64,000 bases of DNA, from the NCBI GenBank assembly GCA_001643675.2, contig LSRY02000018.1, forward strand, positions 930,001-994,000, written 5' to 3'. Shown here in pieces: positions 4,972 to 31,895 of this stretch (its first letter is position 1; every line of letters begins with the position of its first letter). The stretch comes from Monocercomonoides exilis PA203. Taxonomy: Eukaryota > Protista > Preaxostyla. Below the pieces are notes generated by a model, which was not told the DNA's origin, ran no database searches, and saw only the letters and a program-made list of their open reading frames with translations. The translations under genes and the position numbers were made by a program.

Positions 4972-6000
4972 TTAGTTCTTTCTCTGTTCCTTTCTCATCT
5001 TTGTCTTGTCTCTGAAAGACATAAGACTTCTTGAGCAGAATGTTCCCGCGAATTCAGATGCAAAGTCAAATAACAATGCGTTTCTACGATGTATTTTAGC
5101 CAAAATTTTCAGAACGGATAATGTATTCAAATAGATATGTTGCAAAAGGAAATATTCATATTCTTTTGTATGCAGCGTTTTCTGTTGTGTCTGTGTGAAC
5201 GCATTCTCCACCAATGGCAGGACGGAGCAAGAAAAGATGAGCCAACTGATGTTGGCAGAAAGAGACGATACACCATTGATGACCAGAAGGGAAAGCATTC
5301 CTATCTTTACAAAGGTTTTATTGAAGCAAAGTTTGTAAGAAATAATCTCCGTCTCCACTGCAGAAGTTGACTGTATCGCAAGATAAGCATCAGATTTATA
5401 TGAAAATTATTGAATTGGTAAATTTAAAATTCATGCCATTATAGACAACTCAAAAATTTGCAAACATAAGATGAAAAAAGTTCTTATAATTTCTCTTGCA
5501 TAAGAACAAAATAAAAGCAAACGAGGAAATCCTGATTTCAATGTACTCGATTTTCCATTGAAGGCTACATTAAAGGCCTGGAGCTTCATAAAGTTTCTTG
5601 ACTCAACATGACTGTGAATTTTGGTATATGTTTTGGGAAACATATGGGGAACACCGTTTGATAAAAATTATTTCCGATTGACCACATCCAAAACATTTTT
5701 TTTTTTTTTGGAAAAAAATGTAACAAATATAGAATATACGAGTGAAATGGTAACATCATCGCTGATTATCATCATTGTGAACTAAAAGAATCCAATTCCG
5801 CAGCCAAATCTAAGAGTTGCCATTTCAAGGATACGAGCAAAAACATGTGCAAGTGGTAAATATGAAATAAGATAATCCTGTTCCCCGTCTTTTGGTGTTC
5901 CAGTCGTTCATAAAGCGTAAGCAATTGTGAAAATTGAATCAGGTGGTAATGGACGATTTTCAATTAAATTGGACTTTCTCAGAGCTATCTGATCCAAATT
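4972..6000 (-). pseudogene. Degenerate long-chain acyl-CoA synthetase (AMP-binding family) pseudogene
   Basis: The minus strand reads RPLPPDSIFTIAYAL*TTGTPK (AMP-binding motif YTSGTTGxPKG, TGA at 5908-5910), then ISYLPLAHVFARILE...GIGFF, GVP..F.K.Y.KI and KLCFNK..IG....I.G...LS. These are in ACSL order, with deletions, stops and no C-terminal half. Confidence 0.75.
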
Positions 6001-6612
6001 TTATAATTATACATTCAGAGCGAAAATAATAAGGTTAAAAAGGATAATCAACTCCTATTACACGTCAAAATTGGGGAATTTTCCAGAAGATTTAGTCTCT
6101 TTCACAAATTTTTATTCGTCCGATGTCAACACAATATCTTTCGAATCCAAATATAATTTTATGAATTGATACAAAACATTCTAACAAGATTCAAAGAAAA
6201 AATGTAAGTGTATTATTTTGTAAAGTTCAACATCGCAACTATCGGATACGTTGATAAAACATTACAAAAAAAAGTGGAACTGAATAATTTGAACTTTAAC
6301 CATGCTTTCCAAGTTTGAAAGAAAAATAGATGCAATAACCATAACGAGTTTTGATTTCATTTTTTTAAAAACACCTTAAAATATTAATTAGATAAAAAAC
6401 GAAATAGAAAATGATAACAATTAAGTATCATTCATACCCTTCTTAACCTTAATATGTTAAATACAATGAATCGGATTCATTCGTTAATTTTCATTACACA
6501 TGAAGAAAATATCACTTTAATTTTTCTATTTGATCTTCAAAAAAAATCTATTATTTGTATTTTATAAAATATATTTTTGGATCAATATAAGATCAAAATT
6601 GTTTGTTGAGAA

Positions 6613-8220
6613 ATGAAGGTTTGAGTCTTGCAAGAGAGCTCTGCGATATTATCATAATTTTTGTGAAAATGATTCTTTTTGTTGTTTTGTTTTCTTTCGA
6701 AATACTAGCTCAATATTTCGTACCCAGCCACTGGGCAGCAAAAGTTGATTGAGATCAACGATGAGCAGAAGATGTATGTTTCATTTCTCAAATTACTTTT
6801 AACACAAAATGTACAATATATTTTTTTTCTTTTTGATTCTTGAAGACATATCTTCATGGAGAAACAGATGGGACAGGAAGTTGATGGAAGTGCTTTGGGC
6901 GAAGAATTCAAAGGATACATTTTCAAGATCTCTGGTGGAAACGACAAACAAGGATTCCCAATGAAACAAGGTATTTTGAGTGCAAATCGTGTTCGCATCA
7001 TCCTCAAGAAAGGTATTGATATCATTACAGATTATTATTTCAAAAAATGTTTTTCAATCTATAATGAATTTTTTTCCCTGTGATAAGGTGATAAATGCTT
7101 CCGTGAACGTAGAGAAGGAGAGAGAAAGAGAAAATCAGTTCGTGGATGTATCGTGTCCAACGATATCTGCGTTTTGGATTTGGTGATCACAAAGAAAGGG
7201 CCAAAGGATATCGAAGGAATCACAGACAAGCCAAGGCCCAGACGTCTCGGACCAAAAAGAGCTGGAAACATTCGCAAACTCTTCGGATTGCCAAAGACAG
7301 CTGATGTGAGGAAATATGTTATCCGTAGGAAGTTGCCAAAGGGAGGATCAAAGGCACCAAAGATCCAAAGACTCATCACTCCACTTCGCATTGCTCGAAA
7401 GAAATATCTTGCAAAGAAGAAGATCGCATCAGCAAAGAAGACAACAAAGGAGCTTCTTGCATACAAGAAGATGCTTCTTGAGAAGAGAAACGAGAAGAAG
7501 AAGGAGGCCATTGAGAAGGCAAGAAAGAAGTTGCAACTGAAGAAATTGAAGGAGAAGAAAGAAGCCAAAAAGAGATGGCTGAAAAAGATTGCCAGCATCG
7601 AAAAGAAGACAGGAAAGAAATACGTCGTTGCTCCAAAGAAGCCGAAGACAAAGAAAGTTGAGGTTGTCCAAAAAGTTGATACAAAGAAATACGACGTTGA
7701 TAATGTTGACAAATCACACAAAGCCGCTCCGCTTCCAGCTATCTTGCTTGCTGAGCTTGACAAGAAATCAGGAAAGAAATCGAAAGCAACAAAGGCAACA
7801 AAGACAGCAACAAAGGCCCCAGCAAAGACAGTTGCTCCAGCAAAGAAGGCAACAAAGGAGACACCAAAAACTGTTACCAAAGCAACAAAAGTTGAGAAGA
7901 AAGTTGCAACAAAAGAAGCACCAAAGGCAGCAGCCAAAGCCACAAAAGCCACAAAAGAAGTGAAACCAACAAAAGCAGCCAAGCCCGCAAAGGAAGCACC
8001 AAAAACTGCACAGAAAGCAGCTCCAAAGGCAGCCCCAAAATCCACATCAAAAGCAACTGAAAAAGTTGCAAAGAAGGCTGAACCTAAGGCTGCACCAAAA
8101 GCATCTCAAAAGGCTTCACCAAAACCCAAACAAGCTCCAGCTCCATCAAAATCTGCTCCAAAGACAGCTAAAAAAGCTGCACCAAAAGCAGCAGCAAAAT
8201 CTGCGCCAAAGAAGAAGTAA
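6613..8220 (+). CDS. RPS6: 40S ribosomal protein S6 (eS6), 4 exons, 456 aa, with a Lys/Ala/Pro-rich C-terminal extension
   Basis: Exons 6613-6618, 6709-6773, 6846-7012 and 7088-8220 (all GT-AG, 1371 nt) give [18 protein letters not shown]...[22 protein letters not shown]...[13 protein letters not shown]...PRRLGPKRA...[11 protein letters not shown]. Confidence 0.97.
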
Positions 8221-9208
8221 TTTCTTTTAGTTTAATTTTTGGCTGGATTATTGTTTTGAAGGCATGTCAATCTCAACAAACTTGAAATATTCTACTCAAG
8301 AATTTTTATTTATTTTTTTTTGCTGAAGGAGACAAAAATCAAAAGAAAATATATCAAAAACAAAGTACAGACTTTATTTTTTAGAGTGAAAGAGTTTTTT
8401 TATTCGTTTCTTAAGGAGAATTAAATTTCTTTCTATTTCTATTATTCCGTTATTTATTTTTGTTTTTTTACAAATTATAGCGATCTAAATGCAAAAGAAA
8501 ATTTTTTATTTTTTGTTTGAAAAATGAAAGTGCCAATAACAGATTCATCTTTTATTTTTGTTCATTTATTAACATTACTTATTTGTGAAACATTCTTGCA
8601 CCGAAGTTTGCTAATGCGCAACTTTTTATTTTTTGAATTCATAGGACGATTTTTGATTTAGGTGTGCGAAGGATGGCAAGAATTAAAATTCCAAAAAGAG
8701 ACTTTATTTTTGATGAAATTAGATTTTTTAGTGGTATGCATCTAGAGATTTCAATTACTTTTCAATAATTAAAAAAGAGTTAATTGCAAACAATATATTT
8801 TTGGAAAGAAAATGTTTATTAGACTATGAAGAAAATGGAGATGGAACCTTTTCTTTGTATGCCATTTTTATAATCTTGATCGTAATTTTGAAATGATTAC
8901 AGACTTGTTGCGCATTGTGGTTTATCAAATGACATTTTTTGGATTTTATGTATTTTTTATCATCATTTATTGGTGGTTTTATCGAAAACAAATAACAAAT
9001 TATGGCGATTGCATCTTGGACATTATGGAGCTGGAAAACAATTGTTACCGTTCCTGCTACAGTTAATATTTTTAATTTTACCGGAGTATTTTGTATGTGA
9101 ATTGAAAAGATTAATGGATAATTAAAAGTATTTTTTTCGCCTTTTTTCTTCATAAAATGCAAGCTTTCAATTTTTGTTTATAAGCTGACAATTCTTTTTG
9201 CACCCGGA

Positions 9209-10771
9209 TTGATGACAATTTACCGCACATTTACGCTACTTATTGAAAAATTTCCACGCTTCAGTTTTATTAATGCAATTATTACTTTATCCGGTGTAGG
9301 AAGTATTAGAGCATTTATTATGACGATTCGTTATTTAATTGAGGCTCAATACGTGATTGTTAAGGAAGGCAACACAGAAAAAATCTTGTTGAATGATGAT
9401 GTCAACGATTTAGGAGATAAAATTAGCTTTAACAGAATCGTCGTCTTGCTTTCTGGGAGCAGTCGAGCTGCACTTGGATCCAACATTTCTGATGACGCCT
9501 CTTCGAACACAGAAAATGGGTCATCTTCGGCTCAGCACGAAGTTAAACCGGTGCAGAATCATGTGACAGCCTTGTCGCCTGTACTTTCTGCTGAAGGCGT
9601 ACCTTCTCCTGGATGGGCATCGGATGGGGCTCTGTTCAAGTACAGCAGAGAAGCTGTGCGGGCTGATCCATGGCGCGTGAAGGAGTGGGACTGGTACCAA
9701 GTGAGCAACAGCCACGTGGCTCTGCAGTTTACGTTTGGCCATGCGTCCTATGCGGGGCAGGTGGGAGTTATGCTGTTTGATTTCCAGAAGCAGAAGACGA
9801 TATACGTTTGCGACTGCATATTGCCTGTTCCTGTGCTGTGGATGAAGCTTGATGCGAGCGCAGGGGAAGATAGCGTCTTGGAGTACAAGAAAAAAGGGAT
9901 GTGGATGCAGATAACTACGAAGGAGAAAGGAAAAGTGAGGCGAATTGCTTGCAAGACGGAGGAATTTGAGTGCGATGTGACGCTGAGTCGGTTGAATGAC
10001 AATTCCATTGCGCTGGTTGTTCCGTTTAAAGAAAGCGAAAATCAATTTTATTTCAATGAGAAAATTAATTGCATGTCGGCTTCCGGGAAGGCAACTGTAA
10101 ATGGGGTGGATTTCATTTTCCGAAATGCGTCGCAAACGGAAAAGAGGAAAGATTCATCGATTTCGCATATTGTCGAGCCATCGAGCAAACTTGATTCTTC
10201 TTCGAGTGAAGCAAAAGAAAGCTTATTGCTTGACAACTCAAGTGAGAAAGAAGAGCAAGCGAACGAGCAGGATGATAATATGAAAGCCAAATCAGAGGTT
10301 GGAAAAGATGTTTGCGTTGACCGAGCTGATTGCGATGAAGCGTGGGGGCTGCTGGACTGGGGAAGAGGGGTATGGCCTTATCACAACGAATGGTATTGGT
10401 CAAATGCAACTGGAAGGGTTAATGGAAAAGTATTTGGCTTCAATCTTGGCTGTGGATTCGGGGAAACTTCAAAAGCAACAGAAAATTGTTTGTTTTTTGA
10501 AGGAAGTTTACATAAATTAGGAAATGTGAAGATAATATGCGATCATCAGGATTACATGAAGGAATGGAAGTTGGAGGATGAGGAAGGAAGAGTTGCTTTG
10601 GCATTAAGTCCAACATTTGATAGAAAAACTGAAACGAAGATGTTGTGGGTTGACAACTGCACTCATCAAATGTTCGGGAAGTTTCATGGTGTTGTTTCAC
10701 TTGATGATGGAACAAAGCTTGAAATTGATAATATTTTTGGATTTTCGGAATATGCTGTGAATAATTGGTAA
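9209..10771 (+). CDS. DUF2804-family protein (bacterial-type); true start uncertain, possibly with spliced upstream exons
   Basis: Motifs QHEV...PGWA, R.KEWDWY, YFNEKINCM.ASG, GLLDWGRGVWPY...WYW, FGFNLG.GFG, TEN..F..G..HKL, HQMFGKF.G and a terminal F.EYA.N.W. No introns in the conserved domain (~9535-10771). The frame is open back to a possible AG acceptor at 9163. Confidence 0.75.
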   Translation: MMTIYRTFTLLIEKFPRFSFINAIITLSGVGSIRAFIMTIRYLIEAQYVIVKEGNTEKILLNDDVNDLGDKISFNRIVVLLSGSSRAALGSNISDDASSNTENGSSSAQHEVKPVQNHVTALSPVLSAEGVPSPGWASDGALFKYSREAVRADPWRVKEWDWYQVSNSHVALQFTFGHASYAGQVGVMLFDFQKQKTIYVCDCILPVPVLWMKLDASAGEDSVLEYKKKGMWMQITTKEKGKVRRIACKTEEFECDVTLSRLNDNSIALVVPFKESENQFYFNEKINCMSASGKATVNGVDFIFRNASQTEKRKDSSISHIVEPSSKLDSSSSEAKESLLLDNSSEKEEQANEQDDNMKAKSEVGKDVCVDRADCDEAWGLLDWGRGVWPYHNEWYWSNATGRVNGKVFGFNLGCGFGETSKATENCLFFEGSLHKLGNVKIICDHQDYMKEWKLEDEEGRVALALSPTFDRKTETKMLWVDNCTHQMFGKFHGVVSLDDGTKLEIDNIFGFSEYAVNNW

Positions 10772-11637: not shown

Positions 11638-11740
11638 CAGATATCGCATTAAATATAGGACATCGCACAAAATACCTGACATCATCGATTTCTCTGTAAC
11701 TGCAAGAGGAATTATTTTTGACAATTTTCCTCAAAATATA
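11638..11740. mobile_element. Left arm (first part) of a disrupted CAGATATCGC foldback MITE
   Basis: TA|CAGATATCGCATTAAATA... matches 27097-27114 joined to 27830-27914. It continues at 20770-20871 after the 9-kb insertion. Confidence 0.8.
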
Positions 11741-11756
11741 CACCAAAAATTATTCA

Positions 11757-12078
11757 AAGTCGAAAAACTTTCAATCGAAATCGAAAAACTTTCAACCAAA
11801 GTCGAAAAAGTTTCAAACGAAATCGAAAGTTTTCATTCGAAGTCGAAAAACTTTCATTCAAAGTCGAAAGTTTTCATTCGAAGTCGAAAAACTTTCATTC
11901 AAAGTCGAAAGTTTTCATTCGAAGTCGAAAAACTTTCATTCAAAGTCGAAAATTTTCATTCAAAGTCGAAAAAGTTTCAAACGAAATCGAAAGTTTTCAT
12001 TCGAAGTCGAAAAACTTTCAAACGAAGTTGAAAAACTTTCAATCGAAATCGAAAAACTTTCAAACGAAATCGAAAATT
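11757..12078 (+). repeat. Tandem array of ~16 x 20/21-bp units (AAGTCGAAAAACTTTCATTCR) in the left TIR
   Basis: Units read directly, mixing 21-bp and 20-bp variants, with no spacers. Confidence 0.95.
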
Positions 12079-12290
12079 TTTTATTCAATGAAAATGAGTT
12101 TTAAAATGTTTTGGATTTTTTTTGTAAATAATTTTTAATTTCTTTTTATTTTTTTATTGAAATGTTTGAAAATTATTGTTTTCAAAATAAAAATAAAAGT
12201 GAAGAAAAGAAAACAATAAAAAAGAAAAACTTCACTCGAAAAAAAATGAAAAATAAAGAGAAAAATTCGTGACTAATCAACATCTAAATT

Positions 12291-13867
12291 TTATTCATTT
12301 TGAAGATCTTGTGATAATTGATGAAAAGAGTTTGTTTCTGGAATTTCAATCAACGGAGAAGATGTATCTTCTTCTTGCAAAGAACTAATATAACAATCTT
12401 GATGAAATTGTTGACAAAAACTCGAAGAAATAACAGATGAAGAAGCTGAAGCAGAAGCTGAAGCAAAAGAACATGGCATAATTTGAACATCGTCACTTTC
12501 AAGCTCAATTTCTTCAATGCGTGATCCTTTTCAATTCGCTTGAGAACTTTTGTACGAATCACTGAGATCTTTTCCTTGATGTGCTAAAGGAAGAAAATTG
12601 AATTGAACCATGTTTAAACATTTCAAAACGTCCTTTCGAGTAATATCTTCCAACGATTTATTCAGATGCTCAATTTTTTTTTCACCATTTTTATCAAAGA
12701 AGGGATTTTCAGTCGAGCTTTCCACATTCCAAACACATATTCGATAGGATTCAGTTCGCAACTATTTGGTGCAGTGTATAAGATACCATAGTTCTTAGAA
12801 GTTATCAGATTAATCACTGCCTCTGTCTTATGCAGCCCCACGTTATCCATCACTAATAAGAATGATTCCCTTCCATGAGATTGAAGTTTCTCCATTAACG
12901 ATAATAGGAATACTCTAAAACTTTGGTCATTTACGCTTCCTTCTACAAACGTGACATGCTCAATTCCAGAAAGTTCACTTATCGCTGTAATTGCTGTGAC
13001 AGTTTCTATTTTCGCTTTCTCTCTGTACTGTATACACCGTTTTCCAACTGGTGAGCGACCTTCAGTTCTTAATTCCAATGTGTTAAATCCAGTCTCGTCA
13101 ATGTAAACGAACGTTCTTCCTTCCATTTGATGCTGTATGTATTTTCTCACATATTCTTTTCTTAGATTTAATGTTTTCTCATCAGCTCTTGCATTTTCGT
13201 ATTTTCGCAATCTTTTTTCAGAGAAAACAGGGCATCGATGATCAATCATTTTATCCGATTTCAAATGGCGACCAATTGTTGACACAGAAGGTTTTGATTT
13301 ACATAAGCCACCCACTGAATCTGCTAGTTCTTTGGAAGTCACAGTTGGATTTCTCAGGATTATTTCTGCCATTTTATTTGATGCCTCTTTAGTAATCTTT
13401 TCGTAAACCTTTCCTCCTCGTGGCTTTGGTGGCTTTTCTTCCCGTGCGATTACTGAAGCTGTGGATATGCTAATGTTGTATTTCTTTGATAGATCTTCCA
13501 GAGTTTTTCCATCCTTGTAATCTTTTTTCAATAATTCTCTCATGTCATTTGGAAGTTGAACAGATTGCTTTCTTTTCTTCTTTTCTTCGTTAATTTCGAT
13601 CTTCTTTTTAGGGCGCCCTAGCTTCTTTTTTTCCATAATTGTCTCGCATTGCAGGAACGGGAACTGGTCAGTCTGTTCGGAATTAGGAACATGGATGTCG
13701 GCAGGAGGAATTTCTTTTGTTTTTTCTTCAATTATTTTTTCCAACTCTTCAGATGCTCTTTTCAATTTTGAGTTTATCCTTTCCGATGAATGATGTAAAG
13801 ACGATTTTTCTACCATTTCTTGCAATTCTTGAACACGTTTTTTTGTTTTTGTAAATTCTGTATTCAT
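12291..13867 (-). CDS. IS630/Tc1-like DD34E transposase, frameshifted near the C-terminus
   Basis: ORF 12662-13867 has an AT-hook-like GRPKK, an HTH region, VYIDETG, LVMDNVGLH and ELNPIEYVFG.WK (34 residues between the second D and E). The expected C-terminal helix (IEHLNKSLEDITRKDVLKC) lies in another frame after a T9 run at 12674-12682, with a further TGA at 12531. Confidence 0.88.
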
Positions 13868-14515
13868 TCGTTCGTAATGTTTATCCCAATTTTTAATATT
13901 TTTAAAAATTTTAATATGATTTTGTGGGATTTACTCCCCATGTCACCCACCAGTTTCTTATGAGAGTTAAATGGAGGAGAAGCCCCCCCATTTCCCCCCC
14001 ATAAGAAACAGGTTTCATATTAAAATACAATAAACATAAAGATCAATTTAGACTAATATACAGAAAAAACAATTATCAGCCAAAATTGTGGGAATACTTA
14101 AATGAATCTTCAAAAAATGGAAAAAAAAATCACAAGTCTTGAGTTATTTTATGATTTTAAATAATTCAAACAAATTTTTGCACTAAAATTCTTGCTTTTA
14201 ACAAAAAGAAAAATTTGATCAACAATATTTTCATTTCAAATAAAAGAAAATATTGCAGAATTCAAACCTTTTGTTTCGTGTCAAATTGAACATATCGTTT
14301 GGAATTCATTTCGATCCATATTTTCGAAATTTTCATTATTTTGCTTTTCACTTCAAAATTCTGGATTCTTAACATACCTTGCAAAACTTTCCCTCCTAAT
14401 TAATTATAAAATCAACAAATAAAAATAATTAGAAAACGAATAAATCAATTGATAACAAAGTGTATTCAAAGAAAAAATTATAATTTCTTATTTATTTGCA
14501 TTCGAAAAATTATAA

Positions 14516-15325
14516 CTAAACATTTAAATGTGAGTTAAGAAGGCCAAAATACCAACCAGTTCCACGCAAATCTGTTATTGAACAATTTTCCACTCTGTTA
14601 TCTTGGAACGTCCAAACAGAATTTGATTGCGGATACCATGATGTGACTGCTCCTCCATAAGCAGCTGAACAGCTCGAGAAATTGGAATTTGCGATATTGA
14701 CATTTAATAAATTTTGAGCGAACAACGCTCCACCATGATCATTGGTTGAACAATTGTTGAATGAACACGATATGATTGCAAGATTAGCATTTGTTCAATC
14801 CACATAAAGCGCTCCTCCTCGATCTGGCCCACCATTTGAATCATTCCATTCGCACCATTCAAAAAGATAGCTATTCAGGTTGAATGAGAACATTCTTTCA
14901 AGTTTTAATTTATGAGTTTCGGATCCGTTATATCTTACAACATCATTTGGAGAAGAACGTGTTTGGTGGAGAAAAGAAGCGTTGAAGGCAGAAAGAGAAG
15001 TGGATTGGCTGTTGATGTTGGGGAGGATAGTTCCATCGATGGCGTTGTGTGTGTGGAGGAAGAGGGATGAGTGGATGGAGAGGGAGGAGTGAAGAGAGAA
15101 GGAGGGAATTGAATTAGTGTTGACGTTGGCGGAAGTGGAAGTGGAAGAAGAGGTGGTTGAGGTGAATGGGTTGAGTGAGCGTGAAGGAAGAGATGGAAGA
15201 GATCGAGGGGATTGGGGAGAGGAGATGTTGGAGAAGAGGATGTTTGAGAGATGGAGAAGGAGGTGGAGACTGGTGAGTGGGCATCTGGGAGAAAGAATAT
15301 TTGGGTGGGGGAAGACAAGAAGCAA
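14516..15325 (-). pseudogene. Captured or degenerate N-terminal fragment of a beta-helix surface protein gene inside the 9-kb element
   Basis: ORFs 14795-15325 and 14516-14725 are one frame separated by a single TGA: NAIDGTI...FEWCEWN...RGGALYVD*TNANL.IISCSFNNC...GGALFAQN...C.A.YGGAV. Collinear with the N-terminus of the 2479-aa protein; truncated. Confidence 0.75.
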
Positions 15326-18300
15326 CTCTACGGCAGAAGATGAGCAAAATGAAGAAGGAAAGGAAGATGGAGATGGTGATGTTATAAGTGCCGGAGCGGA
15401 CGAAAAGCGAGCAGAAGGCGCTGGTCAAGAAGGAAATTGAGAAGCGGTATGCAGCATTTTCATTAAAAACAGAGGAACAGAAGAAAATGAAGGTGAAGTG
15501 TGAAGAGTTAGCGCATTGGCTTGTTGAGCAGGTGAAGGAGATGAAGGAGCAGGTGGAGATGGTGAAATTTAAGCATGTGCAGGGAAGGTGGATCAGATAA
15601 AAATGTTGTGAGGAGGAGGATGATGAAAAGGCAAAAGAAAGAGTGCGATCGTGATGTTTGAGATTCCGCAATCCCCGCATTATGATCCGAAGAGAGAGAG
15701 AGCGGGAAGAGTCGGAGTGGCCTGAGAAATCGCTGTGTTGAACGGGGACAGTGATGCCTGGTGCATGTGCGGCAGTTCCACCAGCAGTGTAGATGGTGAT
15801 GGAGCGGCTGATGAGAACTATCTCTGAGTAGCTGATGCAGGTGGTGAATGAAACAGCGCATATGTTTCAGATGATGCTCCAGTTGCAATCGTCTGAACCG
15901 ATTCAGCAGAGTAATCAGCTGCTGGAAACAGGGCCTAAATCTTCGATAACGTGATCTTTTTCGATTATCCAGAGGATATACGGAGATAAGATCTCTGAAG
16001 ACATAAGCTGAGGATGTCGAGGGCGGGCTGGTGTGGTGCTTCCAATGTGAGGGTTTGGAGATTTTGTGTTTATATGGCTGTGGGAGAAGCACTCTACGTA
16101 AAAAAAGAGCGAGGCAACGCGGTAGGATGAGATCTTCGGAGTGGAGCTGTTCCGGAAGTACTTTCAGAAGATGCAGCCATTTGATGAGTTTGCGCTGGAG
16201 AATTTTTCTGGAGATGAGCTGTCATTTTTTATGTTATTCAACACAGTGCTTGAAGGAGATTCGAAGAAGAAAACCATGTTGTTTTTTGGGGGATTTTGAT
16301 GGGCTGCATTCGGAGAAAGGTGAAGAAGAGTCATCTGTGTTTGTTGCGTTTTTGCCGAACCTTCATCGGGCAGAAGCTGCAAAGATGAAAGATGAGTGGA
16401 GGAACCCTATAATGACAAATGTTTAAATGATGAATCTTCTTCTTCGTATTTATCTTCGTCATCTGGTGTGACTTGTTGTGTCATCACGAACGATGATATG
16501 GAGTCTATTTGGTATGTGCCATCTGCGAAAACTGCCTGTGCTGTTGCTGCGGATCTTCCAGTTAGCTTGCTGATTATTTGGATTCTGTTTGTCGTCATTT
16601 TCATGGGTGCTGAATGTGTTCCAGCACAAATACTTCTTCATGCGCTGCCTGAAGATGCCAAATGTGTGAGAAGCTGCCAACTTCAGATTTCCTCAATTCT
16701 TACCACAGAACAGCTCAGTTGTGAAGACGGTTTGTCGGAGCTGGATGATCAGGTGCAGGTGCTTTCGGTGGTGTCAGCGGGGGCAGGGCTGGATCGAAGC
16801 GATGATGCTGGTGCAGCTGGTGGGGCGGGAGCTGGAGAGGGAACGAGGTGGAAGAGGCAATCTGCTTTGCTGTGCTGCTGGGGAACGGGCAGCGTGTGCA
16901 GCTGCTTCACAAGGAGATGGTGTGGCAGAGGGAGGGATTGAGGGAGGAGTCAATGTATTGTCATGCTTCATCATCAGCATCTCCTTCTTCAGCACAGTAC
17001 AAACAAGTTCTGAATTGCAAAGAATTGGCAATCGACAATATGCTGCTGTTCTTTGCGTGTGCGTCGGGTGTGATCGATCCTTCCATTTCTCCTCCTTCAT
17101 TTTCATTGGAGTTGTCATTTCCATTGCAATCGTTTTCTTTTCCTTATTCTTCTTCTTCTTCTTCCTTTTCTTTCTTTTTTCCTTTCTCTTGACTTATCTT
17201 CAAGCATCCCTCAAATTTCTATTTTCATTTTTCATTTTTTCTTCCTTTTCATTCAAATTTTCTCTTTCATTCAAATTTCTTTTAAATATCTTCTTTTTCT
17301 TCTCGATCATTTGCCAAATTTCTTCTTCTGCCACATCATCAACTTTTGTTTCCCTCTTTTTGCTTTTAACAAGATTCGTCCTATATGTCTTCCAAAGCCT
17401 TCAAAAATTTTTTATCTTCTTTTCCATTCATTTCATTTATATTTCACGCCCCCTCACTCCTCCAAGCGCCCCTTCAATTGCTGTTTTCTGACTTCTTTAA
17501 TGCATTTAACATCCTTTCTTTCCATATTCTATAGGCATATATTCGCAGTAAATATACCTGCGAAACAATCTAATTTCAACAAAAATAATAATTAATGAAA
17601 AAGAACATTGAAAAAAGAGGCAAACCTATGACTGTTATGATAATCATTCTTTTCAAATTTTCCTCTCCTCCTCCAAATATTTCTCCATTCTACCAACAAA
17701 ACCCATCCGCCACATCTTCGCTTCATCTCTGCTCCCAAAAAATCGTTTTTTTACAATCCTCTGTTCTGCTTCCACTCAAATAACCTCCACAAACTCCATT
17801 CTATAAAAAAACTGATAAAGAAGAAGATTCCATCTGAAGAATCCCTTCCCATCTCTTTTCGCTGTATTGCCTTCTTCTTCTCTCCATTTCCCCCCAAAAC
17901 AACAACAATACCACCACGCCAAATATCACAGTCCCTGTCTCCCCATCTCCCATTCCCCTTCTTCCAACCAATAAAAATATAAATACCTCCATCCTTTTTC
18001 TGTCTCTTTCCATTGCAAGACACCTCCCATAGTCAACCCCTCATCTTCCTCTGTCTCCACACCTCCAATGCAAAGCGCCAGCGCTGATGTTCCTTCTTCC
18101 CGTCTTCCTCCACCCCCACCTCCATCCCTTGCCCTGCAAATGAGAGGCGCGACCAAACTGTCCTTTCAATAAAAAATTAAAAAAAGAAAAAGAAAAAATA
18201 TTTTCTTTTTTTTTCTTCAATCCCACTTTTCCTTCTTATCAAACACTCACTCACAAATACTCTCCCTCTTGCTCCGCCTCATATGAACCCTCTTCTCTCT

Positions 18301-20288
18301 CCCTGCATTTGAAAAAAAATATCATCCCTTTTCCCTATCTCTCCATTTCCTTTCCCCCTTATATCCTCTCCTCCAATAAATATATTCCATTCACTCCACC
18401 CATCTTCTGTCCTTCTTGTTTTCCCCTCTTATCCCACCTCCTCCACATCAAATTCCATTTCTCAAATAATAAACACTGCCTCAACTCCTTCCCAATAGCA
18501 AAAATCTCAAAAATAACCCTTCCCAACCTCATCCTTATCCATCTCCCACACATCCATTATGCCTCTTAAACCTCCCAAAAACACCTCTTTTCCACAAAAA
18601 ATATCCTTTAATCGTTCCATTCCCCTTCAAAACCCTGCTTCCTCCAAAAACTCAACTCCATCACTCCACACCACAAATCCATCCTTTTGTTATCGCATTG
18701 TCTTTGTATGCCCATTCATCCACGACACATCGAGTTGTGCTCCTTTTCTTTTGTGGCTCAAATTAGTTATGGAAAATGATCAAGAAATGCCAAATGCTCA
18801 GAAACTGTCAACGGGGTCAGATTCCGAAGCTAAAACAAAGACAGGTTGACCAAGTGAATTAATTACAGTGAAAGGGTTGGGTGTTACAAAACGATATCTG
18901 CTTGATGGAAGATGAAATTGTTCATTTTGATTGATAGAATGCCGTGAAGCAACAATATTTTCGATGGAAATGCAGAATTTTTACTGTATGTATTTTATAT
19001 TGTTCTATATGTTGTGAAGGTGTTATCATCCGTATCCTTTCCAAAGTCGTGATTCAGACAATTTATTTAAAATGGACGATTTATTCTTTGCAGAACAGAA
19101 CTGCAATGAAACGAGACAAATATTTTCTTACAAATATATTGGAGCCTGAATGTATTTTGTTACGAATATTTATGGAAGTTATTTTGGACTCAACATGCGC
19201 AATGGATATAAATACGATGAATATGAATTTTGCGAGAACGAAGAGCTTCTGGATGTGGAAAACTTGCGGACATAAGAGATTTTATTTTAACTTACGACGA
19301 CGATGAAAAACTCTATCCGAAGAAAAATATGAAATAGATATTTTTGAAGAAATAAATGATGAGAGAAAAAAATGAAGAAAAACGAGGAAAAAGGCTGAAC
19401 AAGAAGTTTGAAGACAAACAAAAATGAAACTGCACTTTTGTCGAAGTAAGAACTTAGAAGAATTGAAGTTAATAGCTGTGCTTTTGTAGGACATCATTAA
19501 AACCTTTTTTTTTTTTAAATTGGAATTTTTTAATCTCTTTTTTTAAAGAAATTCTTCAACAAAAATATCTGAAATTGTAATGAATATCGTTAATTGTGAT
19601 TTTTTCCCAATTGTTTATCAAAAAACAATAGTGAAAAAGGTTTTATTTGAATAATCTTTAAAAATCACAAAAAAATATCTTTTATTAGTCTTTTCAACTA
19701 ATTTTAATAAAAAAACAGTAGAGCATTTTTCGATAAAATGTTTTGAAAAACTTCAAAAGAATGCATAATATATTTTTTCACAAAAAAAATCTGGCTCCCT
19801 GAGTAAATGCAAAATTCCCCTAAATTTTCAAAATTTCCATAGACAATTTCAAAATAATTGGGTTATTTCAAAATAACCCAATAATTTAGAAAAAAATTCT
19901 GCATTTCACGATTCATCTAATAATCATGGAATATTTTTTTGATCTGTGGTGATTTTTCTAAAAATTTTCATCCGTATAAAAATTTTTCTTTAATTGAAGA
20001 AAAATGTTTATATCGTTTTTTCAACATAATCAATATTTCCTTTATTTTCATAATGATGTCAACTCAAAACTGAAAAATAAACAATTTTTATTAATTTTTA
20101 AAATTTTTGCATAAACGTTCAAAAGTTCAAATCACATAAAGTGATATTCAATAATTCAACAATTTTGAAAAATAAATATAACTTCTATATGAATCTTGAT
20201 AATAAACATTGTATTAAAAGAAAAATTCAACTGTATTTCTATTTGGTTTTATTCATTTTTTCTGTATCTTAAGATTTCCTAATAATAA

Positions 20289-20751
20289 TTTCGACTTCGT
20301 TTGAAAGTTTTTCGATTTCGTTTGAAAGTTTTTCGATTTCGTTTGAAAGTTTTTCGATTTCGATTGAAAGTTTTTCAACTTCGTTTGAAAGTTTTTCGAC
20401 TTTGAATGAAAACTTTCGATTTCGTTTGAAACTTTTTCGACTTTGAATGAAAATTTTCGACTTCGAATGAAAGTTTTTCGACTTCGAATGAAAACTTTCG
20501 ATTTCGTTTGAAACTTTTTCGACTTTGAATGAAAATTTTCGACTTTGAATGAAAGTTTTTCGACTTCGAATGAAAACTTTCGATTTCGTTTGAAACTTTT
20601 TCGACTTCGAATGAAAATTTTCGACTTTGAATGAAAGTTTTTCGACTTCGAATGAAAATTTTCGACTTCGAATGAAAGTTTTTCGACTTCGAATGAAAAC
20701 TTTCGATTTCGTTTGAAAGTTTTTCGACTTTGGTTGAAAGTATTTCGACTT
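20289..20751 (-). repeat. Tandem array of ~22-23 x 20/21-bp units in the right TIR (inverted relative to 11757-12078)
   Basis: Reverse complement of the same unit types, with more copies than the left array. Confidence 0.95.
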
Positions 20752-20871
20752 TGAATAATTTTTGGTGTATCTCATCAATTCAAACTCATTTGATATTCAA
20801 AACTTTTAAAATATCTTCATTTGTGCTCAGAAAAAATAATTTTTTAGAATTAAGGAGAAACTCAAAATCCT

Positions 20872-23800
20872 GGCATAGGTGCATCTGTGCTTCTTTTGCA
20901 ATTTGCTCTGTTTGGAATAAACTTTATGATGAAATAATAGATAAAAATAATTTAAAACTTTTGGGTGGACGAATTTTTTGAAATTGTTTTTTCTTGTTGA
21001 AAAAAATCAATTTTGAAAAATCACCCATAAATATTACAATTTTTAATCAAAATAAATATATAAGGATAATTACCTATATATAAATACATGCAATGATTTT
21101 AATTGTTATATTAACCTTTTGTATCAATAAATTTCTGAGAAATAAAACATTTCAAAAAATTAAAATTTAAATGAATAATTTTTGATCAATCCCACAAATA
21201 AATTATAAATTTCTAAAGATTTAGGATTAGCTTTTTTTGTGATGTGTGGGGTGAACACTTTCCAATATACCACAATTTGAATATATAAACATTATATTAT
21301 CGTATGCACTGATTGTTATTTAAAATATTCTTCTACTATTAACAAATTTTGATTGTTAGAATATGAAGCTGATAATTATGCAACATGAAACTTCATGAGT
21401 CTTCCATTGGAGAAATCTATTAAAGAATTTTTGTTCATTCGATAAAATTTATATCATATTATATTATGTTTTGTTTTAATGAAAATTATTCATTTGTATT
21501 TCAGTTAATTTAAATTTTTCAATTCAATGAATGAAAGAATCACTGAAAAAAAGCAGAATGAATCGAAAAAGGAAATATATCGTTGAAACCCTTATCGAAA
21601 CACCCTTCGAAGACGTGCGCAGGTGAAAATAATTGATTGATGAGAAGTCGAAATAAAGATAGTGAAATGGAAATAGAAAAAAAATTACAAAGAAGAAGAA
21701 GAATTTGAATGAGGAAAAGAATATAATAGGCGCAGGTGACTGAAAAGATGATATCATTAAGGAAACAATAATTTCAAAAATCGATGAATTTGATTATTTG
21801 AGGTCAAAGGTGAGAAAAAATTAGAAAGACTGAGAACAAAAAGGAAAAGAAGAGAAACAGGAAAATAAGTGTTGACTGGTGTGTATATTGAGTTTCGATG
21901 TGGAAGATGAAAAAGTTAACAAAATGGAGCATTATAGTTTTTGTTATTGTTATTTCTTCAATTCCTTTGACTGTTTTTTCAAATATTCAACATTTCAGAA
22001 GAATATTATTAAAAATTATATTTGGGTAGTTAGTTAAAAATTGATATACATTTTTTTGCAACTCATTATTCATGAGAGCAATGTATTGGAATTATTAAAA
22101 ATTTTTGACTTCATATTTTTAAATATTTATAATTCCTTTGAAACGCTCTTCATTGAAAAAGAATGATACAAGAATCCTCGATGATTGTCACTTGAAAATG
22201 AGCAGTCATGCACTTTATTCTATCTCCCTCACTTCCACATCCATCGATCACAAGCGCTTTCAGAAATGAACAAGAATCTTCGATTGTGCCTCCATCCATC
22301 AATTTCACTTTTTTTCTCCTTCTGTTCCATTTCTGTCAATGCTATCATTTTTTTCTTTTCATCGATTGGCACAAGAAGATTTCATCTCCACTATCCCGAT
22401 TCATCATATCCACACACTTCCCACTTCCCACTCTCCCATTCAACACCCCTCCATTCCTATTCCCTCTCTGAATTGATTTGAATGTGCAGTTCCAGATTTT
22501 CGCATTAATCCCTTCTCCAATCTCAATCTCATTTCCATTCTCAAAACGAGTTCATTCATCGTTGTGTTCTTTATCTCAACATCCCCTCCATTTCTCAGCT
22601 AAAAAATAGGCTTCTTCCCTCATTTTCTCTTGTCACATTCTTCACAATCACCTCATCAATCAATCCTCCAACCCCTGCTCCATCAAAAGTCACTATCACT
22701 GATTTGGTTATTGCAAAATCTCCAAATTCACAATTTGCCAACTCCACTTTCCCTCCTTTCCCACAAATCAATCCCACTCCAATCTCTTGTGATTTTGCTC
22801 CAAATGAACATTCCTCAAATTTCAATGTGCTTGCACCGCACAAAAATACATACTCCTTTCTTGATTCGGCAAATGTTGATATCGATAATGCCAATGACGA
22901 AAACGATATTATTTGTTCGCTCTTTATCAAAAATTCATTTTCTCCTCCTTCGACAATTCCAATCTTTGCCTTTTCAATATCTCCACCAATGTTCATTTGT
23001 TGAGTGTTGAGTATCATTTCATCAATAAAAAAACTTCCATCAACAAGTTTCAGTGTTGCTGGTGATGTGCCAAACACATTTGTTCCTGCATATGTCAATG
23101 TGGAGCATGCAAAGTCAGAATATCCGCACTTATGATAGTTCATCCCTCCATTTCCCCCATTCACAAACCCAACACTCGGCTTCTCTCGTAGATCAAACTG
23201 AAATTGACATTTATTGATCAAAGATGTAATGTTGTAACATTCAATGAAAATATCATTCCCCACTCTTGCTGTATAAGCACTAAACTTCATCCACATAAAT
23301 GTGAAATCCTATTTTCCTCTTTCCTTTATTGGCAAATACGCTCCTCCTTTCCCATTGAAGCAGCTGCAATGACTGATTTTTCTGTTAATCAACCAATTGA
23401 TCCAGATTCCACCAATATGAAGAATATTGTTCCTCCATTTTCATTTGAAATCATACTGTCTGCAACATTCCGAAATGAAAATATAACAAATATTTGACAT
23501 AATTTGAATAAAGTTAAAATATTCTCCAATATTTAAAAAAATAATTATTTTTTTAACGATTTTCCGAATGAACAAAAATTCTTTAATAGATTTCTCCAAT
23601 GGAAGACTCATGAAGTTTCATGTTGCATAATTATCAGCTTCATATTCTAACAATCAAAATTTGTTAATAGTAGAAGAATATTTTAAATAACAATCAGTGC
23701 ATACGATAATATAATGTTTATATATTCAAATTGTGGTATATTGGAAAGTGTTCACCCCACACATCACAAAAAAAGCTAATCCTAAATCTTTAGAAATTTA

Positions 23801-24134
23801 TAATTTATTTGTGGGATTGATCAAAAATTATTCATTTAAATTTTAATTTTTTGAAATGTTTTATTTCTCAGAAATTTATTGATACAAAAGGTTAATATAA
23901 CAATTAAAATCATTGCATGTATTTATATATAGGTAATTATCCTTATATATTTATTTTGATTAAAAATTGTAATATTTATGGGTGATTTTTCAAAATTGAT
24001 TTTTTTCAACAAGAAAAAACAATTTCAAAAAATTCGTCCACCCAAAAGTTTTAAATTATTTTTATCTATTATTTCATCATAAAGTTTATTCCAAACAGAG
24101 CAAATTGCAAAAGAAGCACAGATGTACCTATGCC
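20872..24134. mobile_element. Non-autonomous Pack-type DNA transposon, copy A (3263 bp), with 570-bp TIRs, GGCATAGG termini and 8-bp TSDs
   Basis: TIRs at 20872-21441 and 23565-24134. Left flank AAAATCCT; right flank CGCACTTT (reverse complement AAAGTGCG). No transposase inside. Confidence 0.92.
22480..23495 (-). pseudogene. Captured internal fragment of a beta-helix surface protein gene in copy A
   Basis: ENGG.IF..L, GKGGA, F....A..GNDIFIEC.NI...I...QFQFD and FV......Y.KCGYSDFACSTL match the repeat modules of the 32777-40216 protein. It has stops and deletions. Confidence 0.75.
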
Positions 24135-27114: not shown

Positions 27115-27827
27115 CAGTCAAAACCGGATGTAATCACATCGAATATAATCACATTCGTTTATAGTCACATTTTTCCATGCACCGACATTTTTAGCTCATT
27201 TTTCATTCATTTTCCATCGAATATAATCACAGGGATGAAAATATATAATCACATTTTTTATTATTATGCGTGCTTTTTTCAATGAAAAATCGACTTTTTG
27301 ATCAAAAATATGGGTGATTATTTTTGAAATCATATCTTTTTTCGGGGTGTTGATTTTTCAAAGATTGAAAGTTTTTCGAAAGAAATTTTTGTTTCAAAAT
27401 AAAAATAACATGATAATTGTTTTTTAAAATACAATTGTTTCAGTTAAATGAACGATTAAAAATGTTTTGAATAAGTCTTTTCACTCTTCTATGTTTTTTA
27501 ATTGTTATTCATCAAATATATTTGCACCGAAATTTTTGTTAGAAAAAATATGATTTCAAAAATAATCACCCATATCAATTTTTGTTTTTACAAAAATGTG
27601 CTCAAATAAGTCAAAATAATGAGTATTTATGATCAAAATTGTTCAAGCAAGTGAAAAAAGTGTATTTGTGTTGAATTTCCAAAAATAAAAAAATCGACCC
27701 AAAACTAATTATCTCAAAAATCAATTTTTATTTTCTTCTGTTTAAAGTTGCATCGCTTATAATCACAATCGGATATTGTCACAAAAAGTCGTGCAAAAAC
27801 CGATGTGATTATATCCGGTTTTGACTG
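27115..27827. mobile_element. CAGTC-type MITE containing a nested TGGGTGATTA MITE; TA TSD
   Basis: GCATTAAA-TA|CAGTCAAAACCGG...CCGGTTTTGACTG|TA-TTGGACATCGC. The empty-site equivalent GCATTAAA-TA-TAGGACATCGC is at 11646-11666. Confidence 0.9.
27311..27572. mobile_element. TGGGTGATTA-type MITE (262 bp) nested in the CAGTC MITE; TA TSD
   Basis: ATCAAAAA-TA|TGGGTGATTATTTTTGAAATCATAT...ATATGATTTCAAAAATAATCACCCA|TA-TCAATTTT. The empty site is in the paralog at ~25337-25354 (reverse complement ATCAAAAA-TA-TCAATTTT). Confidence 0.9.
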
Positions 27828-28013
27828 TATTGGACATCGCTTAAAATACCGGACATCATCGATTTCTCTGTAACTGCAAGAGGAATTATTTTTGACAATT
27901 TTCCTCAAAATATATCTCATCAATACAAACTCAACTGAAAAACGAGACTTTCAAAATAGCTTCTTTATGCTTAGGTAAAATTATCGATTGAAATCTCGGA
28001 ATAATAGGATTTT

Positions 28014-31000
28014 GGCATAGGTACATCTGTGCTTCTTTTGCAATTTGCTCTGTTTGGAATAAACTTTATGATGAAATAATAGATAAAAATAATTTAAAAC
28101 TTTTGGGTGGACGAATTTTTTGAAATTGTTTTTTCTTGTTGAAAAAAATCAATTTTGAAAAATCACCCATAAATATTACAATTTTTAATCAAAATAAATA
28201 TATAAGGATAATTACCTATATATAAATACATGCAATGATTTTAATTGTTATATTAACCTTTTGTATCAATAAATTTCTGAGAAATAAAACATTTCAAAAA
28301 ATTAAAATTTAAATGAATAATTTTTGATCAATCCCACAAATAAATTATAAATTTCTAAAGATTTAGGATTAGCTTTTTTTGTGATGTGTGGGGTGAACAC
28401 TTTCCAATATACCACAATTTGAATATATAAACATTATATTATCGTATGCACTGATTGTTATTTAAAATATTCTTCTACTATTAACAAATTTTGATTGTTA
28501 GAATATGAAGCTGATAATTATGCAACATGAAACTTCATGAGTCTTCCATTGGAGAAATCTATTAAAGAATTTTTGTTCATTCGGAAAATCGTTAAAAAAA
28601 TAATTATTTTTTTAAATATTGGAGAATATTTTAACTTTATTCAAATTATGTCAAATATTTGTTATATTTTCATTTCGGAATGTTGCAGACAGTATGATTT
28701 CAAATGAAAATGGAGGAACAATATTCTTCATATTGGTGGAATCTGGATCAATTGGTTGATTAACAGAAAAATCAGTCATTGCAGCTGCTTCAATGGGAAA
28801 GGAGGAGCGTATTTGCCAATAAAGGAAAGAGGAAAATAGGATTTCACATTTATGTGGATGAAGTTTAGTGCTTATACAGCAAGAGTGGGGAATGATATTT
28901 TCATTGAATGTTACAACATTACATCTTTGATCAATAAATGTCAATTTCAGTTTGATCTACGAGAGAAGCCGAGTGTTGGGTTTGTGAATGGGGGAAATGG
29001 AGGGATGAACTATCATAAGTGCGGATATTCTGACTTTGCATGCTCCACATTGACATATGCAGGAACAAATGTGTTTGGCACATCACCAGCAACACTGAAA
29101 CTTGTTGATGGAAGTTTTTTATTGATGAAATGATACTCAACACTCAACAAATGAACATTGGTGGAGATATTGAAAAGGCAAAGATTGGAATTGTCGAAGG
29201 AGGAGAAAATGAATTTTTGATAAAGAGCGAACAAATAATATCGTTTTCGTCATTGGCATTATCGATATCAACATTTGCCGAATCAAGAAAGGAGTATGTA
29301 TTTTTGTGCGGTGCAAGCACATTGAAATTTGAGGAATGTTCATTTGGAGCAAAATCACAAGAGATTGGAGTGGGATTGATTTGTGGGAAAGGAGGGAAAG
29401 TGGAGTTGGCAAATTGTGAATTTGGAGATTTTGCAATAACCAAATCAGTGATAGTGACTTTTGATGGAGCAGGGGTTGGAGGATTGATTGATGAGGTGAT
29501 TGTGAAGAATGTGACAAGAGAAAATGAGGGAAGAAGCCTATTTTTTAGCTGAGAAATGGAGGGGATGTTGAGATAAAGAACACAACGATGAATGAACTCG
29601 TTTTGAGAATGGAAATGAGATTGAGATTGGAGAAGGGATTAATGCGAAAATCTGGAACTGCACATTCAAATCAATTCAGAGAGGGAATAGGAATGGAGGG
29701 GTGTTGAATGGGAGAGTGGGAAGTGGGAAGTGTGTGGATATGATGAATCGGGATAGTGGAGATGAAATCTTCTTGTGCCAATCGATGAAAAGAAAAAATG
29801 ATAGCATTGACAGAAATGGAACAGAAGGAGAAAAAAAGTGAAATTGATGGATGGAGGCACAATCGAAGATTCTTGTTCATTTCTGAAAGCGCTTGTGATC
29901 GATGGATGTGGAAGTGAGGGAGATAGAATAAAGTGCATGACTGCTCATTTTCAAGTGACAATCATCGAGGATTCTTGTATCATTCTTTTTCAATGAAGAG
30001 CGTTTCAAAGGAATTATAAATATTTAAAAATATGAAGTCAAAAATTTTTAATAATTCCAATACATTGCTCTCATGAATAATGAGTTGCAAAAAAATGTAT
30101 ATCAATTTTTAACTAACTACCCAAATATAATTTTTAATAATATTCTTCTGAAATGTTGAATATTTGAAAAAACAGTCAAAGGAATTGAAGAAATAACAAT
30201 AACAAAAACTATAATGCTCCATTTTGTTAACTTTTTCATCTTCCACATCGAAACTCAATATACACACCAGTCAACACTTATTTTCCTGTTTCTCTTCTTT
30301 TCCTTTTTGTTCTCAGTCTTTCTAATTTTTTCTCACCTTTGACCTCAAATAATCAAATTCATCGATTTTTGAAATTATTGTTTCCTTAATGATATCATCT
30401 TTTCAGTCACCTGCGCCTATTATATTCTTTTCCTCATTCAAATTCTTCTTCTTCTTTGTAATTTTTTTTCTATTTCCATTTCACTATCTTTATTTCGACT
30501 TCTCATCAATCAATTATTTTCACCTGCGCACGTCTTCGAAGGGTGTTTCGATAAGGGTTTCAACGATATATTTCCTTTTTCGATTCATTCTGCTTTTTTT
30601 TCAGTGATTCTTTCATTCATTGAATTGAAAAATTTAAATTAACTGAAATACAAATGAATAATTTTCATTAAAACAAAACATAATATAATATGATATAAAT
30701 TTTATCGAATGAACAAAAATTCTTTAATAGATTTCTCCAATGGAAGACTCATGAAGTTTCATGTTGCATAATTATCAGCTTCATATTCTAACAATCAAAA
30801 TTTGTTAATAGTAGAAGAATATTTTAAATAACAATCAGTGCATACGATAATATAATGTTTATATATTCAAATTGTGGTATATTGGAAAGTGTTCACCCCA
30901 CACATCACAAAAAAAGCTAATCCTAAATCTTTAGAAATTTATAATTTATTTGTGGGATTGATCAAAAATTATTCATTTAAATTTTAATTTTTTGAAATGT

Positions 31001-31275
31001 TTTATTTCTCAGAAATTTATTGATACAAAAGGTTAATATAACAATTAAAATCATTGCATGTATTTATATATAGGTAATTATCCTTATATATTTATTTTGA
31101 TTAAAAATTGTAATATTTATGGGTGATTTTTCAAAATTGATTTTTTTCAACAAGAAAAAACAATTTCAAAAAATTCGTCCACCCAAAAGTTTTAAATTAT
31201 TTTTATCTATTATTTCATCATAAAGTTTATTCCAAACAGAGCAAATTGCAAAAGAAGCACAGATGCACCTATGCC
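28014..31275. mobile_element. Non-autonomous Pack-type DNA transposon, copy B (3262 bp), an inverted near-identical copy of 20872-24134
   Basis: TIRs at 28014-28583 and 30706-31275. Left flank AGGATTTT (reverse complement AAAATCCT); right flank AAAGTGCG. The differences from copy A that I noticed are 1-bp homopolymer indels. Confidence 0.92.
28653..29667 (+). pseudogene. Captured beta-helix surface protein gene fragment in copy B
   Basis: Same sequence as 22480-23495 in reverse complement, with an extra 1-bp frameshift at the T-run near 29115-29120. Confidence 0.75.
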
Positions 31276-31895
31276 AAAGTGCGCACTTCCAACACTCCTT
31301 CAAGGAATTATCGATAACAGAAAGCGCATGTCACTGGAAAACTTTCGCTGCTTGCTTCTCATTGATTCACACATTTCTCGCGCAGATCCGACAATTTGGA
31401 GAAAAGTTCGAAAAGAAAATATCGACATCATCACCTTCATTCCTCACAGCACACATATCGCCCAGCCTCTTGACAGAGGAGTCTTCGCTGTTCTCAAAAA
31501 AGAACTGCAAACAAAATATGAACCTCCATCTTCATCGACATCTTCATCATAAAGAATAGCTTTTATAAATGTTCTACTTCAAGCAATTCATACCTCCCTC
31601 TCATCTGCTGTCAAAAAAAGCCTTCACAACAAGTGGAGTTCTTCATGACGAATCTGGACCGATTCTTTTGAAGCTTCCAGAAACATCGGAATATCAACCT
31701 TCATCACATTCAAAAAGATTCGACTTCTATAGCAAGTTAATAACTGATGAGAAGCTACTGAATGATTGGAGTAATTATTTTGGAATTGAAGAAGAAGAAA
31801 AAGCTGAAAAAGAAGAAAAAGTTGATGATGAAAAGAATTCTTCAGAAGAAATTAAAAAAGCATGGCAAAAGACGATAATGAGCTTTAATCTTTAA
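31276..31895 (+). pseudogene. C-terminal half of the pogo/Fot1-like DD35D transposase
   Basis: KCALP...LLLIDSHISR...ITFIPHSTHIAQPLDRGVF.VLK (35 residues between the second and third D). It joins in frame to the 24135-25015 half across the TSD AAAGTGCG (F-I-K-C-A-L-P). Confidence 0.88.

Follow-up and report, generated by a model that had tools for sequence, protein, structure and literature searches.

Why a Tc1/IS630-type transposon of the oxymonad Monocercomonoides exilis PA203 should span 9 kb, and where the DNA between its ends came from, are the questions raised by positions 930,001 to 994,000 (forward strand) of contig LSRY02000018.1 (GenBank assembly GCA_001643675.2), a stretch of 64,000 nucleotides hereafter called the window. 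The element is a 9,027-bp insertion at 11741-20767 of the window, with identical inverted 22-nt tips and a TA on each side; it holds a transposase gene and, between the leader of this gene and the terminal inverted repeat (TIR) beyond it, 6,251 bp that do not belong to its family, referred to below as the filling (Table 1). On balance, we favour the reading that a single IS630/Tc1 copy took up this foreign host DNA through repair-associated copying, which would make it a Pack-like element with a slightly damaged transposase gene.

The limits of the element can be placed to the nucleotide. Its 22-nt terminus has two exact occurrences in the window, at 11741-11762 (+) and 20746-20767 (-), with 0 expected by chance, and each is bordered by one copy of a TA target-site duplication (TSD). 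With the 9,027 bp and a single TA left out, the junction aligns continuously with a second segment of the window, 27828-28013, in which 83 of 87 positions are identical on the left side and 98 of 131 on the right; since this paralogous site is uninterrupted and has a single TA, everything between the two TAs of the element is an insertion. The initial annotation had regarded this site as an in-window equivalent of the empty site that supports exact TA boundaries, and the continuous alignment and the single TA agree with this, except that the site is a paralogue and not an allele. Beside it, at 27760-27825, lies a ~57-bp palindromic sequence with ATCACAATCGGATAT-type ends, which is also present at 12026-12082 of L005 (a receptor locus described below) and probably represents another small family of MITEs (miniature inverted-repeat transposable elements). 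The same part of the window contains two 3.26-kb elements (20871-24134 and 28014-31276) with 577-bp TIRs, which are 99.9% identical, lie in opposite orientation and have left flanks that are direct paralogues of each other.

Both ends of the insertion consist of long arrays of short units. Tandem Repeats Finder (TRF) reports periods of 21 and 41 bp at 11752-12080 (~16 units) and 20289-20756 (~23 units), and the arms measure 348 nt on the left and 487 nt on the right. They stand in mirror register at ~95% identity, with unit variants in matching order and only 2 mismatches within the inner ~170 bp; the right arm is longer, with ~5 additional units close to its tip and another two at its inner end. 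The common order of the variants and the near identity of the inner ~170 bp identify the right arm as the element's own partner rather than a diverged stray. The same 21/41-bp layout is common to the relatives from Monocercomonoides, Blattamonas and gut metagenomes, with unit sequences that differ between them. Judging from this arrangement, the units are putative repeated transposase-binding sites, two helical turns apart and on one face of the helix. A description of such an array design for Tc1/IS630 elements was not found, and nothing else about the element is as original as its conserved array-type TIRs; with them, the number of binding sites required by a Tc1-type transposase could be studied in a simple system.

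The gene enclosed by these arms encodes an IS630/Tc1-type transposase. The open reading frame (ORF) at 12662-13867 (-) matches the Pfam domain DDE_3 (PF13358; 6.4e-23), with weak matches to HTH_32 and Sigma70_r4, and it scores 100.1 bits (cut-off 100) against the NCBIfam model of IS630 transposases, NF033545, covering model positions 5-279 of 299. D257, D341 and E376 do not vary when the ORF is aligned with seven homologues, and 34 residues separate the second aspartate from the glutamate (DD34E). The acidic triad of DDE_3, the similarity to the IS630 model including the N-terminal DNA-binding part, the TA duplication and the TIRs together place the element in the IS630/Tc1/mariner group. The DD34E Tc1/IS630-type transposase that had been annotated near one end is thus borne out, although the gene itself is frameshifted and carries one stop: its conserved C-terminal part changes frame after a T9 run (12674-12682) and then contains an in-frame TGA just downstream of 12534. 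The protein measures 507-525 aa in intact relatives. The T9 run, in which the only frameshift of the gene falls, is a homopolymer of an assembly based on Oxford Nanopore reads, and this frameshift may be a long-read sequencing error rather than a mutation. A PDB sequence search with the transposase gave no useful match.

The normal size of such an element can be read from its relatives. Protein searches with the transposase found two other loci in M. exilis (L002 and L003) and homologues in Blattamonas nauphoetae, Streblomastix strix and gut metagenomes. In a quick tree with midpoint rooting only, the window copy groups with L002 (support 99), next with L003 and next with metagenome sequences, inside a clade that includes Blattamonas and Streblomastix; in DNA it is 85% identical to L002 over 12004-13899 and 66% identical to L003. 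In the B. nauphoetae locus L006, 21/41-bp arrays at 7603-7831 and 9671-9894 surround a 507-aa gene, forming a compact element of ~2.3 kb in total with TA outside its CAG...CTG tips. A 21/41-bp array also follows the gene in the metagenome contig L007, and 21-bp arrays are retained 3' of the gene in both L002 and L003; a second TIR was found in neither of them within 9-10 kb by pattern search, BLAST or TRF. The family is one of oxymonad-specific IS630/Tc1 (DD34E) cut-and-paste transposons whose TIRs are built as arrays of 21-bp units (super-period 41 bp), and the normal element of ~2.3-2.8 kb consists of a TIR array, a short leader with a hairpin, the transposase gene and another TIR array. Since the compact Blattamonas relative has TIRs of this array type, the extra 6.25 kb in the window copy is not family DNA. 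Some of these loci contain further insertions. L006 5509-9998 is a small nest, in which the compact 2.3-kb element is inserted in the TIR array of another family copy (arrays 7496-7595 and 9904-9998), and which also holds a decayed piece of transposase in inverted orientation (5889-6257) and one more array (5509-5709). The L002 copy has its 5' leader broken up by a MITE of ~255 bp with GGGTGATTATTTTTG-type inverted ends (8973-9227); an end motif like this one is also present at 19940-19975 of the window and at ~11960-11990 of L005.

The point at which the window copy departs from this plan is marked by the hairpin of the leader. This motif of ~120 bp, which contains a poly-C tract and has a 12-nt inverted repeat at its borders, is found upstream of the start of the transposase; it recurs at L002 8846-8972 and L003 8983-9118 and is conserved among copies that are otherwise 66-85% identical. 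Homology to L002 and L003 stops at 14023-14029, directly after the hairpin, which is the last sequence common to the family. In Blattamonas the TIR array begins ~170 bp upstream of the start codon, which is the point where the hairpin motif ends in the window copy, and there the 5' array begins only at 20281. The filling (14030-20280) thus occupies precisely the space from the leader hairpin to the 5' TIR of the element itself, and without it the element would measure ~2.8 kb; the earlier estimate of ~6 kb of extra DNA holds. In short reads the hairpin is ~2-3x as abundant as the transposase, and it may also be present in short non-autonomous derivatives.

What, then, is the filling made of? 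It is AT-rich at its ends (14030-14545 and 19301-20280) and GC-richer in the centre, with strong strand skews, and can be divided into blocks a, b, X, D and e (Table 1). In protein, block b shows 59% identity to residues 213-368 of the 2645-aa receptor kinase P0183/MONOS_16610 and 65% to its residues 371-454, and its DNA is 74.6% identical to L008 10650-11361. When block b was searched with HMMER against 1.8 billion representatives, the matches were generic beta-helix proteins of 30-45% identity, and the parent family in M. exilis was reached only through P0162 and then P0183. On the evidence of its sequence, block b is a dead internal fragment of a receptor kinase; of the several host surface-protein gene fragments that the initial annotation had placed inside the element, this one is verified and the others are not. 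Block X is 75.4% identical over 2.6 kb to L005 8925-11471 and 67-75% identical to L004 9468-10720, these being paralogous receptor loci in which its equivalents lie just 3' of receptor-kinase genes. Block D has no Pfam match, no protein homologue for its longest ORF (18938-19303) and no match in L004, L005 or L008. A solo long terminal repeat or a 5'-truncated long interspersed nuclear element was considered for it and rejected, there being neither TG..CA ends with a TSD at the borders, which were read by eye, nor a reverse transcriptase (RT) domain. The blocks abut directly, and their ends fall at arbitrary internal points of the source sequences. The receptor fragment, the likeness of block X to the flanks of receptor loci, the absence of block D from L005 and the very unequal copy numbers of the blocks all support a composite origin, and the filling combines four or more mutually unrelated pieces of host DNA, whose cut points are arbitrary, and bears no transposon hallmarks of its own. 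The public annotation places three "hypothetical protein" genes in it, at 14912-15440 (+), 16498-16941 (+) and 17926-18557 (-); the sequence there is skewed, of low complexity or fragmentary, and the three are unlikely to be genuine genes. Scans of the element for Rfam families and tRNAs gave nothing significant.

Such a patchwork could also have grown in place. An element of ~2.8 kb would then have inserted at the TA, and other, mostly unclassified, repeats and transposons, whole or as fragments, would later have nested in turn in the space from the hairpin to the 5' TIR, as junk that was never carried. Blocks b and D and the right part of block X are indeed high-copy in the genome, ~35% of the M. 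exilis genome is unclassified repeat overlapping the kinase family (PMC8767320), and the L002 and L003 copies are without this filling. Other observations speak against nesting. A search for internal TIR pairs within 14000-20300 gave short low-complexity matches only, with no inverted repeat of useful length or position, and a Pfam scan of its 63 stop-to-stop ORFs (at least 45 aa) gave one weak Beta_helix match and no transposase, RT or integrase domain, so that a nested autonomous transposon was rejected. The direct contact of the blocks and their arbitrary cuts speak against serial nesting as well, and block X in L004 and L005 is part of a duplicated receptor locus, not a bounded element. 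Moreover, the filling has no blastn or tblastx similarity to the neighbouring Merlin-type element or the rest of the window apart from a weak match to a receptor gene at 337-465, and an origin from either was discarded; a composite of two full elements was rejected as well, as there is no inner TIR beside the hairpin. The initial annotation had described a later nested insertion as one in which the other copies are ~3 kb and the cargo has its own TIRs and TSD; only half of this was observed, in that the two other copies compared lack this cargo, but the filling has neither TIRs nor transposon domains of its own. Growth in place is an unlikely account that nevertheless deserves to be kept in view.

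Because the blocks abut, are cut arbitrarily and contain no transposable-element domains or inverted repeats, repair copying or fusion of neighbours fits better than serial transposition. In the origin that we favour, a break made by the transposase would start repair-associated copying, and the filling could then arise in two ways: gap repair might switch templates, so that ectopic host DNA comes to fill the interior, or two sister copies lying next to each other might fuse through complementary terminal deletions, as shown for Pack-CACTA. Either would yield a Pack-like element that retains a slightly damaged transposase gene. This mechanism of capture has been documented for Pack-CACTA (PMC6379663) and proposed for all TIR superfamilies including Mariner (PMC8903248; review PMC13317346).

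Short-read contigs from four runs of one sample, mapped to 13300-19299, bear both on the assembly and on copy number; their summed depth is a rough guide, to be compared with a depth of ~30 for unique contigs in run X1. The tandem arrays and high-copy repeats of the region, together with a frameshift in a homopolymer, which is a typical long-read error, might suggest that repeats were wrongly joined in the long-read assembly to give the 9-kb structure. This is very improbable, since contigs from the four runs tile the unique parts free of differences and bridge both the b/X border and the border between X and the multi-copy part, and since the ends match a precise TA duplication and a paralogous empty site. 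The unique contigs equal the window with zero differences over 13412-13939, 14225-14598, 15210-16769 and 16762-17100, and they therefore support the local assembly, including the b/X border. Over 16700-19300 the summed depth increases stepwise toward 19100 and falls after it.

Table 1. Features of the 9-kb element and of its paralogous target site (window coordinates; depth is that of short-read contigs relative to unique contigs)
Feature	Position	Strand	Relative depth	Remarks
TA target-site duplication, left copy	11739..11740	.		read directly; paralogous site with single TA
Left TIR (transposase 3' side)	11741..12088	+		22-nt tip, then ~16 21-bp units, 41-bp super-period
IS630/Tc1-type transposase gene	12291..13867	-	5' part 5x (~17x in first bin)	open part 12662-13867, 401 aa, DD34E
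Conserved hairpin motif in 5' leader	13908..14026	.	13x	conserved in L002, L003; DNA fold -20.8 kcal/mol, z = -5.07
Filling block a, AT-rich	14030..14545	.	3-4x	~3-4 genome copies at at least 80% identity; summed depth 104-138 vs ~30 unique (run X1)
Filling block b, receptor-type kinase ectodomain fragment (beta-helix repeats)	14519..15255	-	250-380x	one frame, one in-frame stop
Filling block X, low-copy	15288..17825	+	central part 2-5x	similarity to DNA just 3' of receptor-kinase genes
Region of rising depth	16700..19300		climbs from ~30x to 330x	
Filling block D, pyrimidine-rich mid- to high-copy repeat	17826..19300	.		absent from L005 there; summed depth 1800-9900 vs ~30
Filling block e, AT-rich	19301..20280	.		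small palindromes; short motif common to L005
Right TIR (transposase 5' side)	20281..20767	-		~23 21-bp units; mirror of left arm
TA target-site duplication, right copy	20768..20769	.		read directly
Paralogous uninterrupted target (empty-site equivalent)	27828..28013	+		alignment across junction; single TA at 27913-27914

Several observations weigh against a single copy filled by repair-associated copying. The filling was not found in L002 or L003, the two M. exilis copies compared, and the 90%-identity protein clusters of the transposase and of the cargo ORF (P0180) contain no second locus. The reads point to 2-4 further copies each of block a (over 14100-14500) and block X (over 15300-16260) at ~85% identity, which are candidate parents or sister elements. 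The high-copy block D and right part of block X may be fragments of unclassified transposons. Finally, classical Pack-TYPE elements have no transposase gene, whereas the window element has one.

The same searches bear on whether the load moves as a unit. The initial annotation had suggested that the element moves pieces of the receptor family, and the same cargo at several TA sites, as this would predict, was not found in L002, L003 or the 90% protein clusters. A functioning Tc1/IS630 lineage of cargo carriers, which takes up such pieces again and again and moves them as a unit, might be read from the fact that all three M. exilis copies have non-family DNA right after the hairpin and no adjacent 5' TIR, from the close similarity of the TIR arms, and from the reads, in which the copy number of blocks a and X at at least 80% identity (~2-5) resembles that of the transposase (~5). 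We nevertheless consider such a lineage improbable: no second site with a matching filling was found in these searches, the transposase gene is frameshifted and interrupted by a stop, the receptor piece amounts to one dead fragment, and L002 and L003, in which no other TIR was found within 9 kb, give the impression of broken rather than loaded copies. It is just as doubtful that the junction of the hairpin and the 5' TIR array is a preferred point of acquisition in the M. exilis lineage, with loaded elements transposing as units and spreading pieces of receptor loci. Nor is a feedback into the receptor family indicated: the receptor piece, an internal fragment, is dead and carries an in-frame stop, and no observation points to its return to receptor genes. 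The question is of some weight in M. exilis, with its huge family of receptor kinases and about a third of the genome made up of unclassified repeat that overlaps it (PMC8767320). If it were true, transposons that scatter pieces of receptor loci could help to explain both the large receptor family and the overlapping repeats. What the locus presents is one dead-looking load in one copy, and its biological impact is unproven.

Among Tc1/IS630 elements (the ITm superfamily), long structured TIRs are known from the inverted repeat-direct repeat (IR-DR) type, e.g. Tc3, Sleeping Beauty and Minos. The window element agrees with these in its DDE_3/IS630 transposase, the DD34E signature, the TA duplication and TIRs with more than one putative binding site. 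It differs from them in the build of its TIRs, which run to ~16-23 units of 21 bp (super-period 41 bp) and have the same layout in other oxymonad genera, in the length of the family proteins (~500 aa in intact relatives), and in its own size of 9 kb. Foldback (FB) elements, for their part, have a Mutator/Phantom-like transposase and a 9-bp TSD. Foldback-like elements with internally repetitive TIRs include Drosophila FB, Galileo, Tetris and Tm1 (PMC3573991, PMC4079207, PMC3169594). Long TIRs made of tandem sub-repeats are common to these elements and ours, and pairs of FB elements can mobilise large host segments; they belong, however, to the Mutator/Phantom or P superfamilies and have TSDs of other lengths. 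The "Foldback-like lineage" that had been proposed for the window element is thus not a member of the Foldback family, since the transposase is of the IS630/DDE_3 type and the TSD is TA, although its TIRs, too, are made of sub-repeats.

The closest comparison is with Pack-TYPE elements. Pack-Mariner elements have already been described in rice and maize (PMC8903248), so that an "undescribed Pack-Tc1" overstates the case. In Pack-Mariner (PMC8903248) and Pack-CACTA (PMC6379663), as in the window element, the TIRs and TSD of a transposon superfamily enclose host gene fragments from more than one locus, and the origin of Pack-TYPE elements by neighbouring insertions or aberrant repair fits our element. 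Pack-TYPE elements are by definition non-autonomous and are known from plants, whereas our element retains a transposase gene and has a metamonad protist as its host. Its filling differs in being mostly non-coding repeat with one dead gene fragment, and it is an unusually large load for an element that still holds a transposase gene. The family TIRs, the receptor fragment and block X from the flank of a receptor locus support the Pack-like architecture, i.e. a Tc1/IS630-type element with array TIRs enclosing host DNA, as the initial annotation had proposed. Taken together, the evidence supports a Tc1/IS630 element combined with capture of the Pack type.

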